A DNA stretch of 63,859 bases, counting the filler, from Klebsormidium nitens (taxonomy: Eukaryota > Plantae > Klebsormidiophyceae): the NCBI GenBank assembly GCA_000708835.1. It is 5 parts of 5 records of this genome, joined end to end, with 100 filler letters (N's around TTAATTAATTAA, not from the genome) between each part and the next. Parts side by side here need not be neighbours in the genome. Positions count along the whole stretch, not along the records: positions 8,736 to 16,782 come from DF238289.1; 4 more parts are not named here. One strand, given 5' to 3'. How positions within the stretch are numbered: position 1 is the first letter of the stretch; every line of letters starts with the position of its first letter. The position numbers and the translations under genes were made by a program. Of this stretch, positions 8,636 through 18,879 are shown one piece after another. Below the pieces are notes generated by a model, which saw only the letters and a program-made list of their open reading frames with translations, had not been told where the DNA came from and did not search any database.

Positions 8636-8976
8636 NNNNNNNNNNNNNNNNNNNNNNNNNNNNNNNNNNNNNNNNNNNNTTAATTAATTAANNNNNNNNN
8701 NNNNNNNNNNNNNNNNNNNNNNNNNNNNNNNNNNNGTTCTTGAAGTGTAAGGTCTTTGTTTCGACCTCTTTGTTATGTACTTTCTTTCCAGTGCCCAGGA
8801 AGAATTTGGAGAGGTCAAGAGAAAAAGATGCTCCGGGCTCGCCATTCTCTCTCGATGATATTCTTTCCTGAGACTGGTTTATGTCACAAGCAGAGAAGGG
8901 TGAAGTCATTATTTTAAACACAGCATGTAAGATTTTCTCGTAGTGTTTGTTAATACATCCTTCGCTTGTCCACAGC

Positions 8977-9471
8977 CTAGTCGCAGAGGCCAGGAACATA
9001 ACAACCACTTCAGGGAACGTGCGGAGACGGATTGACTTCCTCTGCTGGCCCCTTCCGCATCTGCTCGGGACTGTCAGGCCCTTCGCGATCGAGCTGATTG
9101 CGTTCGCTGGGAGGGCTGACATCCTGGAGCACATGAGGCGTGGGTACCCGAAGCTCCACGCCGCTGAAGTGGACGGACGAGTCGAGACGTGCCACACCGT
9201 GGTCGTCCACGTGTCAGCGGACTGGGCTGCCAAGAGGGGCGCCACAGACTACTTTGGGCCACCCGAGGGTGTCGAGGACGTGCACGTCGTGCAAGTTCTT
9301 TTCAAAGAAAATGGGGCGAAGGCACGGATTGCATTCGAGGATAGGGAAAGGGATAGGGAAATTCCAGTAGCGGGGTTGCGCAAGGAGGCCAAAATGGTTC
9401 TTTCGAAGCTGACGACCCCTCCCAGCTCCACTCCAGGCACCCGACGGCCCTCTCTTCCCCAGCCCCGTTAA
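8977..9471 (+). CDS. Terminal exon of an unknown protein
   Basis: A short GTAAG...CCACAG intron precedes a GC-rich open frame (LVAEARNITT...RIDFLCWPLPHLLGTVRPFAIELIAF...PQPR*). Upstream exons are unresolved next to the gap. No family recognised. Confidence 0.45.
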   Translation, partial: LVAEARNITTTSGNVRRRIDFLCWPLPHLLGTVRPFAIELIAFAGRADILEHMRRGYPKLHAAEVDGRVETCHTVVVHVSADWAAKRGATDYFGPPEGVEDVHVVQVLFKENGAKARIAFEDRERDREIPVAGLRKEAKMVLSKLTTPPSSTPGTRRPSLPQPR

Positions 9472-10039
9472 AAGAAGACAATCAATCAGATAGACGGCAA
9501 GCTGGTCGTTCAAAAGGTTCTGGTTCCGCTTGGAGAATGCTGATTGACATCAAGTGCAGCGGTCTGACATGTGCTCTCGCTTTGACAGTTTGTGATTTGA
9601 CTGCTGATATACGTTACATGCCGGAATATATCCCAGATTTGCCGCGAGTCAGAATTCTGTATGCAAGTGACAGGAAGGGTTCGGTTTCTTGTTTGGAATA
9701 TATGTGCAGTCAAATGTGGTTGACAACCTTTATTGACAGAGTTTAAGGCCAACGTACGACTGCCCATGGGCGGCTCCTCCGCTATTCATGCATGTGATTT
9801 TAGTGCCTGTTGTTGCATATCCCAATACTTAGTTTGAAGTATGCACTCCGTTTAAATGATATAATCGCAAACACTGGTGATGCAAGTAAATATGTAGTGG
9901 TATCATACTTAGAATACCCTTGCTCACGGCTATAGTCGTCAGATTGTTTAGACTATTAGTAGGTACTTCTGTTCGACTCCCGGGTTAACGACCTCACTGT
10001 CAGTGTGACATGATTGTATAGCGTTGACATGCTTCATGG

Positions 10040-10680
10040 TGCCTGGCTCAGCTGGGTTTAGAGAGAGATCCTCAGATAGGATCGCGACATCACCAAACAT
10101 ACCAAACATTATGCGCTATAATTGATAGGGCACAATTGTCCAAGGTGTTTGAGCTATCAACAGCGCAAATCCGTCCAAGCTGTCCAAGGTTTCGGAACAA
10201 GTCGTCTCAACCCCCAAATCAATGACGTTGTCAACCATACCGGCCAATTATTCGCGCTACAATTGAGAGCGCGAACCTGTCCAATTAAAGTGACCAGGCT
10301 GTAAGTTCAATGCTATGGGGACCTGTCATTTCGACCCCCAGTGGATGACAGTGGCATCAATATACCAAACATCATGCGCTACAAACCTCTTCAAGGTAGT
10401 CAAGCTTTCCAAGCTTATGGAAGCACACTTCTCGCCCCTCAATCCAATGACATGATCCCCCATACTATCTTTAATGTGCTGTTATTGATAGCACACACTT
10501 GCAAGCTGTTGATAGTGCATACGAATCTAGAGTGTCCAAGCAATTCGAGGGTTCGGGGAACAGTCGTCTTGACCTCCAAATCGATGACGTCATCAACCCT
10601 ACCAAGCATTACGCGTTCAAATTGATAGTGCAAACATGTCCAACACACAAGGTGTCCATGCAACCGTTTGACATGGGGTC
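10040..10680 (+). repeat. Degenerate ~130-140-bp tandem repeat (about 5 units), possibly a decayed LRR-type coding repeat
   Basis: Units recur near 10089, 10227, 10355 and 10592. Plus-strand translations repeat HYAL*LIGHNCP, LFALQLRARTCP and HYAFKLIVQTCP. Confidence 0.6.
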
Positions 10681-11544
10681 GAAAGAAGGCTCCTCTGGAT
10701 GACGTCAGCGGCCAACTTCAGCAGTAAAACACTCAGAGCCCGCCATGGCGCTCTCTCCTCGGCGAACCGGCCATGATGGTCCCAAGCCCGACCGTGACCC
10801 TTACCCGCGCTGACGCAGACCGTTCCGGTCCCCAGCTGCCGTAACGCGAGTCTACCGGGCACCCGGAGGTCAGCCCCTCGAGCGTAGCATATGCGCGCAC
10901 AAGGGGCAGGACCTGTCGTAAGGGCACCATTACCACTCCGGACCGGACCGTTCCCTCGAACCTGAGACGGAAGCTGCCCCTTCTAGTCTCTAGCTTGACA
11001 GCTGCCAGCATGCCCGCAGGAAAGTGCTGCAAGCACCAAGCGCCAAGTGGTTTAGGCATGGGGTAAGTGATTGCGTCATGGCAGTTTTCCATACTCGGGA
11101 GTTGAAATCTAACAAAAGCATGTCTCCGGAGGTGCTTGAGCTTTTGGAGCCAACCAATCTTTGGGACCAACCAATCTGCTTTGCTGTGCTTCAGAATTTG
11201 GAAGCTGTGGGTCTGCTCTGAATTGGTTTGTGCTTCAGTTGCTGTGGGCAAATTGAGTCTCTCTTATGTGTGATTGCAGCTGTGATTAGCAGAGGTAATG
11301 CATGATAAGTAATGGCAAGAAGCCCGCTTTGTGGCAGGTCCAAGTCTGATCAAAGGGTCTGCCAGGCTGCTCGCTTTGCACGCGCTGCAGAGTACAGGGA
11401 GCGCATCTCAATTAGTGTAGAAAGGCAAGAAATTCTGATTGCTGCTGTCAAAGCGAAGCAATGACACACCTGTCCTTCGCCGTCGGTGCTGCCAAAGGGC
11501 AAAGGGATTGAAGCATGAGGGGCAAATTGCTCTCAAAGTTTCAG

Positions 11545-14500
11545 CACGCGGGCGCTTCAGCGCTGCTGATCAGAAAGCCAAGCGGCAGGACGTGCGGGTG
11601 CTCAAAGAAGCTGTGAATTGTGCTGTGGAACGCGGTAAGTTTGCTTCTTCAAAAGCTAACTCTTAAGGTCAGGGGATCACAGGCCCTGGGATTATACCAT
11701 TGTTTCAGGAACAGAGTGTTTTATATCAGGGATTGATAAACTTTCATCAAGATGACCAGCAGAATCTTCAGTGGTATGGCTGGGCATGCGTGGGGAAGTG
11801 TACCAAGCTTTGACCAGTTACTTCTTAGAGCTATCAGTGGGTCATTTCCTGGTAGATCGCCAGAAGTTGGTGGCATGGCTGGGCGTGCCTTGAAAGACGC
11901 GAATGGCCCAGAAGCTGAAGGCAGGACTTGGCGTGTGTAGGAAGTGTACCAAGGAATGGCCAGCTGTTTCTTAAAGATATCAACAGGTCATTTCCTGGTA
12001 CGACGCCAGAAGTTGGTGGCATGGCTGGGCTTGGGAGTGAACCAGGTTTTGACCGATTTTCTTTAACCAAGAGGTGACGGCATGCCTGGGCGCGTGCAGA
12101 AGAGTGTACCGAGTTCTGGCCAGTTCTTTCTTTAGATATCAATAGGCCATTTCTTGGTACAAAGCCTAAACTTGATGGCATGGCCGGTCCTGCATGCAGG
12201 TGTGTGCGGGTAGGATTGGCCCTGCATTTTTCCCTAAGTCTTCTCTCGTTTCCAGACCCGCATGCCATTCACTGCCGCAAGTGCGACATGACCGCAGAGA
12301 ATGGTCTCCGTGGGGGCAAGAAGGGAGGGGCTGTCACATACTTCTGCAAGAGCCATGGCCCATCAAAGGGTTGTTTCAAGATCGACAAGGACCGCGCAGG
12401 TGAGAGGACACACACACACACCTCCTTTGTGTGCAGCCTTCCGCACCTTGACCTTAATCGTTCAGGTCTTTGCATGGCGGCAAGCCCGCTGCAAGTCCGC
12501 ATCTTGCCCTTTCTTGTTTGCAGCATGGGTTCAGGGGCGCGAGAAGATGCGGAGGAGTGCAGATTCTGCCTGTCACCAATGGGGGCAGCATCAGAAGTGG
12601 GCGAGGTCATGGACGGCGACAGCAGGTGAGCGCCCAAAATCTGTCAAACGAGAACCTGGTTCAGCACTGTGCCAAGCCACCTGTCACACCGGTTGGTTGG
12701 CAAATAAGGGTGATGTTCTGACCTGTGCAACATCTGGAGAGGTTTCAAGCGGCGCCCCAAAAGCGGTGTACCAAGGAAAAGCGTATTGTAATACGTCAAC
12801 TCTGTACGTGTACCAGGAAACGACCTATTACTCCTTAAGAATCCTAATGAGTGTTTCTTGGTCCACAGATGTGGCACGGTTGGTCGGTCAGATTGCACGC
12901 CCTCGACAAGTCTGAATTTGAGGACTTCTGGAGAGTTCTGGTGGTCGATCGTGACATCCCAAGAGCAGTTCTGACCCATTGAGTGCCGCCTTTTCAGAGC
13001 CCGCATGCGCTGACCGCAACGCCCACGACAGCCCCCCTGAAACGAACCCCCATGCGACCGTTAGCAAGTCAGAGTCGGAGTGCGGTCTTGGCGCAGCCCG
13101 CCTTCAGCATGCCGCGAATGACGAGGTGCAGCCCGGGCAGCTTCTCGTCCACCGCGCAGAGGGCCTGTGCGCGCTGTCAAGCGGGAGCACCAGTTTGGGG
13201 TTCAGCCCGCTGCCACTAAGAGCGTGCTGGTGAGGAGCGCATTCCAAGGTGAGCGACGACTTCTCGTTTCAAACGTACCCATGCGTGTCGGGAACTGGCA
13301 CGTCTTTCCCCTCAGACATAGGACATGAAATCCTTGGCCTTTTCTCGGTACATCTTGGCAGGTATGGTAGGGGCCCCTCAAATACGGTGTGATGCTTTGC
13401 AGAGTGCGGGGGATTGTACCAAGAAAGGGTGTATTACTTCTTAAACAACAAACGAGCGTTTTCTGGTACATCCTGTAGGGTATGGCTGGGGCCCCTCAAA
13501 GATTCTGCAGGGTATGGCCGGCCCCCCAGAAACGGTGTGATGCTTTGCAAAGTGCAAGGCCGTGTACCAGGAAACGCTCTAGCACTTTCTAAGAATCTAA
13601 GGGCGTCTTTCTGGTACATCCTGAGGGGTATGGCCGGCCTTGTCCAACAAGCGCATGATCCGCGCATCCAGCGCACAATCAGTCAGTGTGTACCAAGAAA
13701 CGTTGTCTTACTTTTCTGAGAATCTAATGGGCGTTTTCTAGTACATCCTGCAGGGCATGGCCGGCCCCGCCCTTCAAGCGCACGATCCGACCATCCAGCG
13801 CACAATAAGCGTGTACCAAGAACCGCTGTTTTTCNNNNNNNNNNNNNNNNNNNNNNNNNNNNNNNNNNNNNNNNNNNNNNNNNNNNNNNNNNNNNNNNNN
13901 NNNNNNNNNNNNNNNNNNNNNNNNNNNNNNNNNNNNNNNNNNNNNNNNNNNNNNNNNNNNNNNNNNNNNNNNNNNNNNNNNNNNNNNNNNNNNNNNNNNN
14001 NNNNNNNNNNNNNNNNNNNNNNNNNNNNNNNNNNNNNNNNNNNNNNNNNNNNNNNNNNNNNNNNNNNNNNNNNNNNNNNNNNNNNNNNNNNNNNNNNNNN
14101 NNNNNNNNNNNNNNNNNNNNNNNNNNNNNNNNNNNNNNNNNNNNNNNNNNNNNNNNNNNNNNNNNNNNNNNNNNNNNNNNNNNNNNNNNNNNNNNNNNNN
14201 NNNNNNNNNNNNNNNNNNNNNNNNNNNNNNNNNNNNNNNNNNNNNNNNNNNNNNNNNNNNNNNNNNNNNNNNNNNNNNNNNNNNNNNNNNNNNNNNNNNN
14301 NNNNNNNNNNNNNNNNNNNNNNNNNNNNNNNNNNNNNNNNNNNNNNNNNNNNNNNNNNNNCTCTTTTCTGGTACATCCTGCGGGGTATGGCCGCCCACCC
14401 AAACAGTGTGAGGCTTTGCAGAGTGTGAAGCCGGGTATAGAAACGCTGTATTACTTTCTTAGAATTGAATGGGCTTTTCTGGTGTATCCTGCACGGTATG

Positions 14501-16150
14501 GCTGGGCAGCCCATCAAGCGCGCTTGAAGCACACAGTCCGCCCCGTCCCGTGCACATTCCGAGTGTACCAAGAAACGCTGTATTACTTTCTTAGGAATCT
14601 AATGGGCCTTTTCTGGTACATCCTGCAGGGTATGGCCGGACCTGCAGCCCACCGTAGCGCACGTTCTGAGGCGTACCAAGAAACGCTGTGTTACTTCTCT
14701 AAGAATTTAATGGGCAAATCCTGGTACATCCTGGGGGGGTATGGCTGGGCCTGCAGCTTTCACGAAAGTGTACCAATAATCATCTCAATCTTTCTTCAGA
14801 GAACAATAGGCAGCTCTCCGGTACATTCGGGTGGGTGTAGCCGGGCCCGCAGCACCATGAGCATGTACCACAAAGTGGCGTCTTTGCCGGGCATGGCCGG
14901 ACAGCCTGCATGCTCTTGATCTTTGGGGCGGGTTGTGAGATTCACGAGCCGCCGTGCCAATCCACGGCGCAGGATCACAAGGCACTGCGTCCACGAAGCG
15001 CGCAATGCGGACGAGCCTTCTGCCGCTGCCTCGACCCATCCCACTCTGGACCCCTCAGAGTGCGAGCGCTCCGCCGCTAGCTCGATCGGTGACGAGGCGC
15101 AGTGCGTGCAACGCCCCGCACGGGAGGGCCTCTGCGTGCCGTCATCTGCGATCCAGCCGGGGCGGCTTCTTGCCACGAGCAGCCGTCGTTCGGTACTCGG
15201 CAGATTGCAAGGCGAGTGTCCGGCAGTCCCTTGCACTGCACTGCGTTGCCGCCCCTGGTCCACTGATGGCACGAAGCATGGGACTCAACCTCTGTTACTC
15301 GTTGGCATAAATTGGGGTGCGCTGTCAGTATGTACCAAGAGGTGGTGTAGTTCTCTGTGAGAATCTAAAGGCTCCTTCCTGGTATATCCTTGGGGGTGTG
15401 GCCGGATTAGCATGTACCGGGAAGTGGCGTGTTTCTCTTTAAGAATCTAACGGCCCTTTCCTGTTACATCCTGCGGTGTATGGCTGGGCTTCCGGCAGTG
15501 TCCCAAGCCAGCTGGGCACACTCATTAGCTCCAGAATCGAAGGTAATTGTTTCGAGTCACGCAATATCGGGAGGGGTTCCAAGCGGCGCCCCAAAAGCAG
15601 TATACAAAGGAAAGCATTCTGTGGTGCGTCAGTTCTGCTTCTGATAAGGAACGTGTACCAAGAAAGAACCTATTACTTCTTTACGATCTAAATGGGCGTT
15701 TCTTGGTACACCTTGCTGGGTATGGCCGGAGCAAAGTTCATGCCCTTGATCTGCCGCACGAATCCGAGGACTTCCGCACGGATTTGGCGGTCGATCGTGA
15801 CATTCACGAGTGCAGCAGCGCTGACCGACTGTGCGCCTCCCCTTTCCAGGAACAATGTGCACTGACCGCGACGCCCACAACATGCGCCACGAGGTCGACA
15901 GCCTCCCCACAACCGCCACAGCCAGCCCCCGTGCGACCAGTGACAACTCCGAGTCGGAGTGCTGTCTTCGCGCAGGCCGCCATCAGAGTGCCGCCAGCAT
16001 GGTCACCGACAAGGCGCAGCTCTGGCAGCGCTGAACGGGAGGGACAGTGCGTGCTGTCGAGCCGGAGCGCCAGGGTTGGAGCTCAGGCGTCGAGACAGCC
16101 CACTGCCACAAGCAGCCATCATCCGTTGTCGGTGAGGAGCGGACTGCAAG
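11545..16150 (+). pseudogene. Multi-exon gene or pseudogene of unknown function with symmetric phase-1 exons and a triplicated exon
   Basis: AG/GT-bounded exons 11545-11634 (90 bp), 12256-12399 (144 bp; HCRKC...YFCKSH...C) and 12524-12625 (102 bp) splice in frame. Paralogous modules lie at 12998-13248 (251 bp), about 14980-15211 and 15850-16150 (301 bp), all ending CAAG|G(T/C)GAG. The first and third are one base off a multiple of 3. Confidence 0.5.
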
Positions 16151-16620
16151 GTGAGCCTTCTCCACGATCCCCGGCCGTCTGGTTGCGGCAAAGTCCTCTT
16201 CTCGATCAGTCGAGAGTTCTTGGCTCAACCTAGGGGAATATCATGGGAAGTGGGGTCGTTCTTCTCAACAACATGGAGCTCGTGAAGAACCTTACGGGCG
16301 TTTCTCCTGTACTTACTACAACTTTCCGGGTCTGGCCGGGCTGCCCATCAAGCACACAGTCTGGCCGTACCAAGAAAGGCTGTATTGTTCTTTAAGAATC
16401 TACTGGGCGTTTCCTGGTACATCCTGGGGGGTATGGCCGGGTTCAACCTGCGGGGTATGGCCGGGTGCATTTCGGGGGGCATGGCCGGGCTGGCCCATCA
16501 AGCGCAGGGTACGACCATCCGGCGCACAATGAGAGTGTACCAAGAAATGCTGTATTACTTTCTAAAGAATCTAATGGGCCTTTCTGGTACATCCTGCAGG
16601 GCATGGCCGGGCCCTTCGAA
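11799..16620. repeat. Complex array of a ~78-bp unit with an internal 12-bp inverted repeat
   Basis: Consensus GTGTACCAAGAAACGCTGTATTACTTTCTTAAGAATCTAATGGGCNTTTTCTGGTACATCCTGCAGGGTATGGCCGG. Starts near 11799, 11945, 12105, 12809, 13415, 13563, 13689, 13812, 14432, 14564, 14672, 14769, 15331, 15413, 15654, 16366 and 16536, plus partial copies; more are probably hidden in gap 13835-14360. Confidence 0.95.
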
Positions 16621-18879
16621 ACGGTGTCCGCCTCTGCAGCGCCGCGAGCGTTTACTTTGTAAGGATCGCAGTGTCTACTTTGTAAGATTCCGTTTACATT
16701 GTAAGATTCCGGGTGTCTGCAGGACCGCTGGTATCGTGGCAGGACTCTCGACGCTCACCTTCTACCATTCTGCTCGCGCAGGNNNNNNNNNNNNNNNNNN
16801 NNNNNNNNNNNNNNNNNNNNNNNNNNTTAATTAATTAANNNNNNNNNNNNNNNNNNNNNNNNNNNNNNNNNNNNNNNNNNNNAAAATGGTGGACATGAGC
16901 TTGACAATGGCGCATGCCCCGGCGGCGCATGAGGTCCGACAGCATGCGCTGCATTGGGTTCACAATCAGTGCATTCCCCAATGCATTCCCGATGTCTGCC
17001 AATGTTGAATTCAGACACGGACTCACAGAAACTTGATGGACTGATTTGAGCCTTCCTTGATTAAGAACCAAGGCTTCAAAGTATGGTCACTTCTTTTTAT
17101 ACACGCTGAGGCACCTGGGCCCATGGCGCAGAAACAAGCAAATTCGGAGTTCGGGCTTCATCAAAAAATGTTTCTATAGCTAGGTACCAAGCAGTTACTA
17201 ACAACAAAGCAACATGACTAACATGACATGCTACCTCATCATGGCGTAACATACTGGGTATAAAGTCACTTAGCAATACCAATCGGAGGCAAAGGGTTTA
17301 TCAGAAGTGTCTCTAATTAAATGCTAGGTTCTACGGCAAACTAGTTTCCCTTCTTCTCCCCGCCCTTGTTGGCCTGCGGCATTGAAGTTCTGCAGCAGCA
17401 GCTGGAGCGCCTGCATAACGGGAGCAGGCACTGCGGACGCCAAGACTTGCGCCGCGGCTGCGCGCCCCCCATCTAGCGCCGCATGCCCCGTGGCGGCAGT
17501 ATCCGAAGAGAAGTTTCTTTCCTAGAAAGTTTTTCTCATACATTCTCAAGAGCTCATGTGCTTTTATTTCGAGCTCATTAGCCTACAAGCACCCTATGAA
17601 TGTCGCAGTATACATATTGCTAATGCTATACTTGAAGCCTAAAAAAAGCATATTTGCAACTCATTAGGTACGTATCCACAAGCCTCTCTTTGGTGGTCAT
17701 GCACTCAAAACATGGCCTGTTGTAGAGCATTGCATGCCTTGCTGAGCTGCCGGAGCTCGGCAGCGAGTCGTTCTGCTGGAAGCAGTCAAAGTTGAGGCCG
17801 GAACAGGCTCGGAACAGATATAAACGGACCGGAACGCCAATTGAGCAGGTTGGGCAGCCCTTATCCGTAATTCGATTTATGTGGATTGTGAGCTTCAATT
17901 CATCGTACGGTGGAGACATCATGTTTAAGAATTGTCCAGCCAAACCGAGATTCTGCGGACCGCCTGTTTGCACAAAGATTGCGAAATCCTAAAAACTAGG
18001 TCTCGAGTGTCATCATAATAGGGACTAGCTCAAAACAAAGATGCGCGTCGTGATACCTTCATGCAATGTAGGTACGGTATTCATAATTATTTCTTGACAG
18101 GGACAAGACTCGATCAAGTTAAAATTCTGCACGAATCTGTGACCCTGCATGCATCTTAACAGGCTTGGGTTTCTGCGAAGGCACCAATTTCCGCGTGTTC
18201 TGGCAGAGGTTGGACATGGCTTAAGTCCACGCTTTCAGTCGACCGCGGAGCTTTCATGCACTCGATCTCGCAGACATTTCGCGATATGTGCTTCTACTCC
18301 TCCGTCGGATGTCTTTTCCGCATCCATAACGTCCACGTTGCTTGAATTAGCGTATCACCTTTCCGCATACATGTATCTGTTGATCGAAGTACATTCCCAG
18401 TGACTGAGTTCCGCAATTGTCATGCGCTTTCGCATATGTCTGAGCCCACCTCCGCGTTTGCTGCGCGTATGCATCCACATTGACAAACTTTTCAGCTCGT
18501 TGCTGGATAGGGGTCGAGCGCCGGTCACTCAGCAGGGGCCGCGCTGGCCCGCACTGCTAAGTGTCGGAGTCCGGGGTGCATCATATGTTCTAGTTCACCA
18601 GTCTAATCAGTGCCTGGGCCGCCCTGAAACATCAACCAGTGCGCCCACACACGGACTCCAAGCCTTGGTAGGCACGCCGCCCCGCAAGGCCCGCTTTAGA
18701 TAGCATTCAAAATAGTCCGACCACGTGACCGTCAAATCCAGAACTACTAATACACTCGAAATGCATCCAGAGAAGCAAGCTTATCCACTTTCAAACGGCC
18801 AAACAACATTGAGCGCTTGACAAGGGGGACTTTTTAAAAAGCGCTGAGTTGAGGGGTCAGAATCGGAAGCCAATTTTGG

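Follow-up and report, generated by a model that had tools for sequence, protein, structure and literature searches.

What kind of element produces a long run of small palindromes that all face the same way? The question is raised by an array in a 63,859-nucleotide stretch of Klebsormidium nitens DNA (the window; all positions count along it). The piece analyzed covers positions 8736–16782 of the window (from record DF238289.1), and statements about the rest of the piece refer to the same span. The piece reads as eukaryotic nuclear DNA, with a guanine-plus-cytosine content of 43–64% in N-free windows and exon-like blocks with GT-AG borders, and nothing in it points to human DNA. A sequence-only reading had reported about 18 copies of a unit with an inverted repeat at 11799–16620, and the array was found to be real. 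A profile trained on 8 units and then run across the piece identified 16 units of full length and about 9 that are partial or truncated between 11798 and 16612, all on the + strand, and no units in the piece outside that interval. The zone of the family, with about 25 same-strand copies, extends from 11770 to 16650. On balance, the array is probably a satellite-like short-array repeat that was derived from, or carried by, a foldback element or one resembling a miniature inverted-repeat transposable element (MITE), and that spread through tandem and segmental duplications. This non-coding composite is most likely ordinary repetitive DNA specific to one eukaryotic lineage.

The feature is real, and its copy number far exceeds chance expectation. 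The arm motif GTACCAAGAAA, with up to 2 mismatches, was observed 25 times versus 1.7 expected. The box GGTATGGCCGG was observed 25 times versus 1.9 expected, with 24 of the 25 matches on the + strand; the lone minus-strand match is weak and has two mismatches. The orientation of each unit was read from the box, which is 3' of the core. Minus-strand matches of the profile were limited to the palindromic core of copies already found on the + strand.

Each unit is composed of a core of 57–60 nt (GTGTACCAAGAAA...TTTCTGGTACAT), an 11-nt G-rich box, GG(T/C)ATGGC(C/T)GG, located about 15 nt downstream of the core, and a linker of one of three types: L1 (...ACGGTGTGATGCTTTGCAGAGTG...), L2 (...CATCAAGCGC...CAGCGCACAAT...), or the short L3. 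The recurring linker families and the constant span of about 57 bp had both been noted from the sequence, and both were recovered here, the core measuring 57–60 nt in 16 of 16 full units. The consensus core is a 59-base imperfect palindrome. The perfect 12-bp inverted repeat that had been described at 15654–15710 is indeed perfect, with 13-nt arms and 33 nt between them (15653–15711), but this is the only perfect-armed copy, the arms of the others being imperfect. The 33 nt that had been taken for a loop are themselves palindromic and belong to the extended imperfect palindrome. The usual arms have 6–8 perfect outer pairs, followed by an A·C mismatch or a bulge and then by about 4 further pairs, and are complementary over 12–16 nt with the bulges included, as terminal inverted repeats would be. 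When the 5' half of the core was compared with the reverse complement of the 3' half, 285 of 406 aligned positions matched, so that the halves are about 70% complementary over their full length. In most units, single-sequence folding gave one long imperfect hairpin with a tip of 4–5 nt.

The three leftmost units (11798, 11944, and 12103), previously described as a diverged subfamily, form a clade of their own with an extra 8 nt between the arm and the box. Tandem Repeats Finder detected only the 24-bp box repeats at 16416–16489 and missed the main array. At 16416–16489 three boxes stand in a row without a core, with a 24-bp period, so that the box is able to multiply without the palindrome. 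The units are nested in a larger repeat, in which a segment of about 0.5–0.8 kb (segment A) is followed by an array; this arrangement occurs three times. The features of the array are as follows.

11798–11882, + strand: unit 1 of the diverged subfamily (core, 8-nt longer spacer, box)
11944–12028, + strand: unit 2 of the diverged subfamily
12103–12187, + strand: unit 3 of the diverged subfamily, with inner stem TGGCC/GGCCA
12664–13345, + strand: segment A, copy 1, with a 5' arm fragment at 12766–12787, a unit at 12808–12889, and an exon-like end CAAG/GTGAGC at 13248/13249
13329–13371, + strand: 3' half of a unit with box, from the profile
13414–13489, + strand: unit, followed by a lone box at 13502–13521 and an L1 linker
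13562–13637, + strand: unit, followed by an L2 linker
13688–13764, + strand: unit, followed by an L2 linker
13811–13834, + strand: first 24 nt of a unit (profile positions 2–25), cut by the assembly gap
13835–14360, no strand: assembly gap (N) within the array
14361–14394, + strand: end part of a unit with box (profile positions 48–77), cut by the gap
14432–14505, + strand: unit with a decayed 5' arm
14563–14640, + strand: unit nearest to the consensus
14671–14748, + strand: unit, followed by an L3 linker
14768–14844, + strand: unit with a diverged interior
14846–15335, + strand: segment A, copy 2, shortened, with a unit at 14860–14900 that lacks the interior and the 3' arm, and junction CAAG/GCGAGT at 15211/15212
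15330–15405, + strand: unit
15412–15487, + strand: unit
15495–16300, + strand: segment A, copy 3, with the perfect-armed unit at 15653–15729 and junction CAAG/GTGAGC at 16150/16151
16283–16339, + strand: decayed unit straddling the end of segment A copy 3
16365–16440, + strand: unit, followed by two extra boxes at 16445–16488 (24-bp period)
16535–16610, + strand: final unit, with an L1 linker behind it that runs to about 16650

The interval 12664–13768 was found to align with 15495–16614 at 62% identity, and a three-way alignment revealed the third, shortened copy of segment A at 14846–15335. Each copy has one unit at its start and a conserved CAAG/GTGAGC or GCGAGT junction at its end, after which the array begins. 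In the tree of the units, adjacent units group together, and so do units at matching positions of different segment copies. The units at 14432, 14768, 14860, and 16283 have decayed freely. All of the copies are arranged head to tail in one orientation, as is typical of satellite-like or transposon-borne arrays, and therefore look like products of duplication, unlike independent insertions. The single orientation, the recurring linkers, the position-dependent phylogeny, the segmental duplication, the free decay of units, and the arrays at other loci fit growth of a composite module by tandem and segmental duplication and are at odds with repeated insertion.

The indels that distinguish the copies of segment A are not multiples of three, and segment A is therefore not a conserved coding sequence; a word search with the open reading frame (ORF) of segment A returned no relatives. 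Its junctions at 13249, 15212, and 16151 are splice-donor-like (CAAG/GTGAGC twice and CAAG/GCGAGT once), and a pyrimidine-rich sequence ending in CAG lies about 250–300 bp upstream of each. Segment A may be an exonised or formerly exonic block.

The array is interrupted by an assembly gap of 526 N at 13835–14360. The left edge (13811–13834) matches profile positions 2–25 and the right edge (14364–14393) matches profile positions 48–77, both on the + strand; one array, in one orientation and one register, is therefore present on both sides. A direct join of the two edges would leave the unit short by about 22 nt, so some sequence must be absent from the assembly. Its length would be about 22 nt alone or with any number of whole periods added. 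Four further periods of about 126 bp each would agree with the estimate of 526 N, although this is arithmetic only. The gap falls inside the array, which is its most likely cause. As the array is non-coding, the gap affects no reading frame.

The rates of change within the unit were determined by counting parsimony changes on a maximum-likelihood tree of the 16 units. The arms accumulated 14 changes in 13 columns, the box 15 in 11, and the core interior 130 in 44, in agreement with the earlier impression that the arms are better conserved than the interior. The rates for the 5' arm end (TGTACC), the 3' arm end (TGGTACA), and the box were determined to be 0.83, 1.29, and 1.36 changes per column, respectively, relative to 2.95 for the core interior as the reference. 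The differences from the interior rate are significant both for the two arms (Poisson p 5.6e-6; Mann-Whitney p 6e-5) and for the box (Poisson p 5e-4; Mann-Whitney p 1.7e-3). Evolution of both the arm ends and the box is thus about 2–3 times slower than that of the core interior. Decay of CpG does not explain the contrast between arms and interior, because the interior lacks CpG as the arms do. What is conserved is sequence rather than pairing. The suggestion that conserved arms at constant spacing are suited to sequence-specific recognition is consistent with these results, since the arm ends change more slowly than the interior and the spacing is kept.

Relatives at other loci were recovered through translated sequence. 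A word search with a 167-amino acid ORF that crosses the array (14416–14916) gave two metagenome ORFs. An exhaustive HMMER search gave 14 matches, of which 9 were genuine, and a cluster look-up added P0015 as the tenth. The genuine ORFs (P0001–P0004, P0006, P0007, P0008, P0011, P0013, and P0015) come from JGI/IMG or Logan assemblies. Nine of the ten are on recorded contigs of 1–87 kb, with at least 5 distinct contigs, and the genuine ORFs are probably spread over eight or more distinct contigs. All of these ORFs read through successive units, with translations of the arm, the box, and an L1 or L2 linker. Since the unit blocks occur in all three frames, the metagenome ORFs are artefacts of a stop-free repeat; since the same arm, box, and linker blocks recur in them, the DNA blocks have been kept at other loci. 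In P0002, one specific unit variant even precedes one specific L2 variant just as it does at window positions 14432–14562. Judged from these translations, the family appears to be a dispersed short-array repeat with several metagenome loci.

Other searches did not enlarge the family. The remaining five HMMER matches (P0005, P0009, P0010, P0012, and P0014) are long, unrelated repeat proteins and were dropped. An exact DNA pattern gave 0 matches in a viral contig scan and in a metagenome contig scan. A second DNA pattern gave 6 matches in genome and viral contigs (L001–L006), which were rejected as single chance matches after scoring with the unit profile. A protein-guided scan of metagenome contigs gave 77 pattern matches, none of which was confirmed, and viral contigs scanned in the same protein-guided way, with P0004 and P0001, gave no match. 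A full-text literature search with the arm and box strings returned only primers and unrelated matches.

The module that was multiplied is a foldback core (the 57–60 nt imperfect palindrome) with the 11-nt box and a linker. The modules multiplied in head-to-tail fashion, and the mechanism was probably unequal exchange or else replication slippage, which palindromes favor. A second multiplication is visible in the alignments described above, in which a segment of about 1–2.8 kb (segment A plus array) was duplicated three times. Repeats of this kind would be satellite-like sequences that derive from, or travel inside, non-autonomous DNA transposons, and a mobile carrier for the arrays is plausible by analogy. 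The slowly evolving arm ends (TGTACC/GGTACA) and the box are most likely recognition sites, we infer, for a protein involved in copying, moving, or binding the element.

The closest described systems are DTC84, Cg_HINE, and Tetris, all of which tie palindromes to the formation or variation of arrays. DTC84 and the related pearl-type MITEs of bivalves carry head-to-tail arrays of core repeats of about 100–160 bp that are dispersed over many loci; each repeat of DTC84 contains a palindrome that was proposed as a hotspot for changes in array length, and its variants occur in a fixed order (PMC3879986). The K. nitens array has in common with DTC84 the short head-to-tail arrays, the palindrome in each repeat, the ordered variants, and the dispersal. 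However, the palindrome makes up most of the unit here and the periods are irregular, and the flanking cassettes with short inverted repeats, the microsatellite at the end, and the AA target-site duplication of DTC84 (PMC3879986) were not found. The Cg_HINE non-autonomous Helentrons likewise have short satellite-like arrays, scattered through gene-rich DNA, in families that combine flanking modules with central repeats (PMC7492417), whereas neither a terminal hairpin nor the ends of a Helitron or Helentron could be identified in the piece. In Tetris, a foldback transposon of Drosophila virilis with a derived satellite, a foldback or palindromic element also builds tandem arrays; its long terminal inverted repeats consist of internal tandem repeats, whereas here each small unit is a palindrome (PMC4079207). 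If this assignment is correct, the array would be a further case of palindrome-bearing short repeats that spread as small arrays, and it would help to annotate repeats and to explain the assembly gap. If the arm ends and the box are functional, either as the recognition site of a transposition or recombination enzyme or as mature small RNAs, then such a compact module would mark the system across loci and species.

Several points weigh against the derivation of the array from a mobile, satellite-like repeat. The unit periods are irregular (82–170 bp) and the mean column identity among units is 69%, which would be unusual for a classical homogenised satellite. The dispersal rests on translated ORFs, in which arrays can be recognized but single units cannot. 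The piece yielded neither transposon termini nor target-site duplications nor a transposase, and the link to mobility is drawn by analogy. Neutral junk alone would not account for the conservation of the arm ends and the box, a contrast that is somewhat inflated because the detection profile and the aligner both favor conserved blocks.

The same palindromes could in principle function as RNA, and structured RNA had been one of the suggestions made from the sequence. The corresponding proposal is a cluster of small-RNA precursors in which 59-nt hairpins within one + strand transcript would be cut to RNAs resembling microRNAs (miRNAs) or small interfering RNAs, with the arm ends as the mature products and the box as a processing signal. 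We regard this as unlikely, although every copy is on one strand, the arms are better conserved than the interior, and the hairpins are of the size of miRNA precursors. There is also a precedent: the Made1 MITEs are 80 bp long, nearly fully palindromic with 37-bp arms and a 6-bp center, and form a hairpin if transcribed (PMC1784062), and palindromic MITEs of this type are known to have become miRNA genes (hsa-mir-548; PMC1784062). The unit resembles them as a very short palindromic element of precursor size. However, Made1 occurs as dispersed single insertions with a mariner parent, TA duplications, and documented miRNA expression (PMC1784062), whereas the copies here are arrayed, and no parent element or duplications were found. 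The pairing was evaluated by mapping the extended hairpin of unit 14563 onto a sequence-based alignment and counting pairs. Pairing was found in 78.5% of the cells, compared with 37–46% when the partners were slid by 1–3 columns, and thus the palindrome is shared and real. However, the covariation was no higher than in within-column shuffles (0.195 vs 0.190, with 171 of 500 shuffles reaching the score), and 5 double-change pairs were observed versus 5.4 expected. The one clear pair flip (columns 19/48, C-G to G-C) splits the subfamilies and represents one or two events. RNAalifold gave a weak consensus (–5.2 kcal/mol, covariation term –0.33). The cores are more stable than shuffled sequence, equally so on either strand: the mean z scores were –3.1 for the + strand and –2.9 for the – strand (Wilcoxon p 0.56), and DNA hairpin z scores ranged from –3.1 to –6.0. 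When the box was included in the fold, the z scores were weak (+0.6 to –2.5) in 15 of 16 units. Transition mismatches are balanced on the + strand, with 29 readable as G·U and 20 as A·C, so there is no strand bias, and the interior mismatches are chiefly pair-breaking transversions, of which there are 72. A search of Rfam 15 (E up to 1) over the piece returned no family, its sole match being a chance internal ribosome entry site, and no tRNA was found in the piece. The absence of covariation, the equal folding of both strands, and the balance of G·U and A·C mismatches make the palindrome a DNA-level property. These results point to a palindrome inherited at the DNA level from the ancestral unit rather than to a selected RNA fold. 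Of the two signs on which the sequence-only reading was to stand or fall, covariation of the arms is absent and excess conservation of the arms is present. It is likewise improbable that the arrays are polycistronic precursors of hairpin small RNAs born from a palindromic mobile element, with the arm ends as mature RNAs and the box as a processing or binding signal.

If sequence rather than pairing is conserved, a host protein might be bound directly: paired half-sites containing GTAC, about 45 bp apart and beside a G-rich box, would form a putative regulatory, boundary, or chromatin-organising element. We assign little probability to this proposal. The sequence-specific conservation in three short blocks, without a pairing signal, and the retention of the same blocks in the metagenome relatives would suit it, but the arrays have been duplicated together with junk-like segments, and the free decay of the four units named above argues against strong selection on each site. 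The arm termini are also the best conserved parts of the unit, as are transposase-bound ends, and the arms resemble terminal inverted repeats with TG...CA ends, which would be expected if independent MITEs had piled up at the locus, one per unit. This is distinctly improbable: copies in both orientations or dispersed through the piece were not found, the units are flanked not by varied target DNA but by recurring box and linker families, the phylogeny of the units tracks their position, and whole blocks have been segmentally duplicated. No target-site duplications flank the units, because the 3' flank is the conserved box and the 5' flank a recurring linker, with no direct repeats. A relationship to the integrase-type ends of Mu, Ginger, or LTR elements, which the TG...CA termini had suggested, could not be sustained; the likeness is limited to the dinucleotides, and no target-site duplication and no integrase or transposase domain was detected in the piece, a Pfam search of 17 ORFs from both strands having given nothing above threshold. 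It is very improbable that the units are mini-introns, similar to introners or tailed mirtrons, that run from GT (GTGTACC) to CAG (CCTGCAG) with mini-exons between them. The consensus unit does begin with GT, and some copies have a pyrimidine-rich CCTGCAG end before the box, but only 5 of 13 main-family units retain the AG at that place, the bases that precede GT are not splice-site-like, and the presumed exons, each a box with its linker, keep no common frame and lie in non-coding flanks. Introners, moreover, are single introns between coding exons (PMC9860276). Finally, ORFs of 101–167 amino acids traverse the arrays, and gene callers have predicted similar ORFs in metagenomes, so that a repeat protein with a motif like VYQETLYYFLKNLMGLFWYILQGMAG might be proposed. 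A repeat unit that is stop-free in one frame is expected to give one open frame. The same DNA blocks, however, are read in all three frames in different units (YQE/VPRK/CTKK, WYIL/LVH/SGTS, and GMAG/GYGR/VWPG), frame-shifting indels of one base between units have not been purged, and there is no Pfam match. The array is non-coding, and an encoded repeat protein is scarcely credible.

The piece contains several other features. A probable terminal coding exon of 164 codons is located at 8977–9471, preceded by ccacag and ending in TAA. It has no Pfam match, and a word search with 8977–9468 found no relatives; the ORF 8977–9468 is present letter for letter in the ESM Atlas. An AT-richer stretch upstream of the array, 10086–10650, holds a second, unrelated repeat family with 3–4 copies of a unit of about 60–130 bp (GACATCACCAAACATACCAAACATTATGCGC...TTGATAG.GCA.A...GTCCAA), spaced by 137–363 bp and with some inverted matches. 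Two exon-like blocks with good GT-AG borders, 12259–12402 and 12524–12625, have a putative Cys/His-rich reading (HCRKC...FCKSHG...C). The intron between them contains a (CA)n run, and partial look-alikes of the 12259–12402 block are found at 11312–11411. Directly after the last L1 linker, at 16650–16710, there are three tandem copies of a 19–23 bp unit (GTTTACTTTGTAAGATTCC-like).

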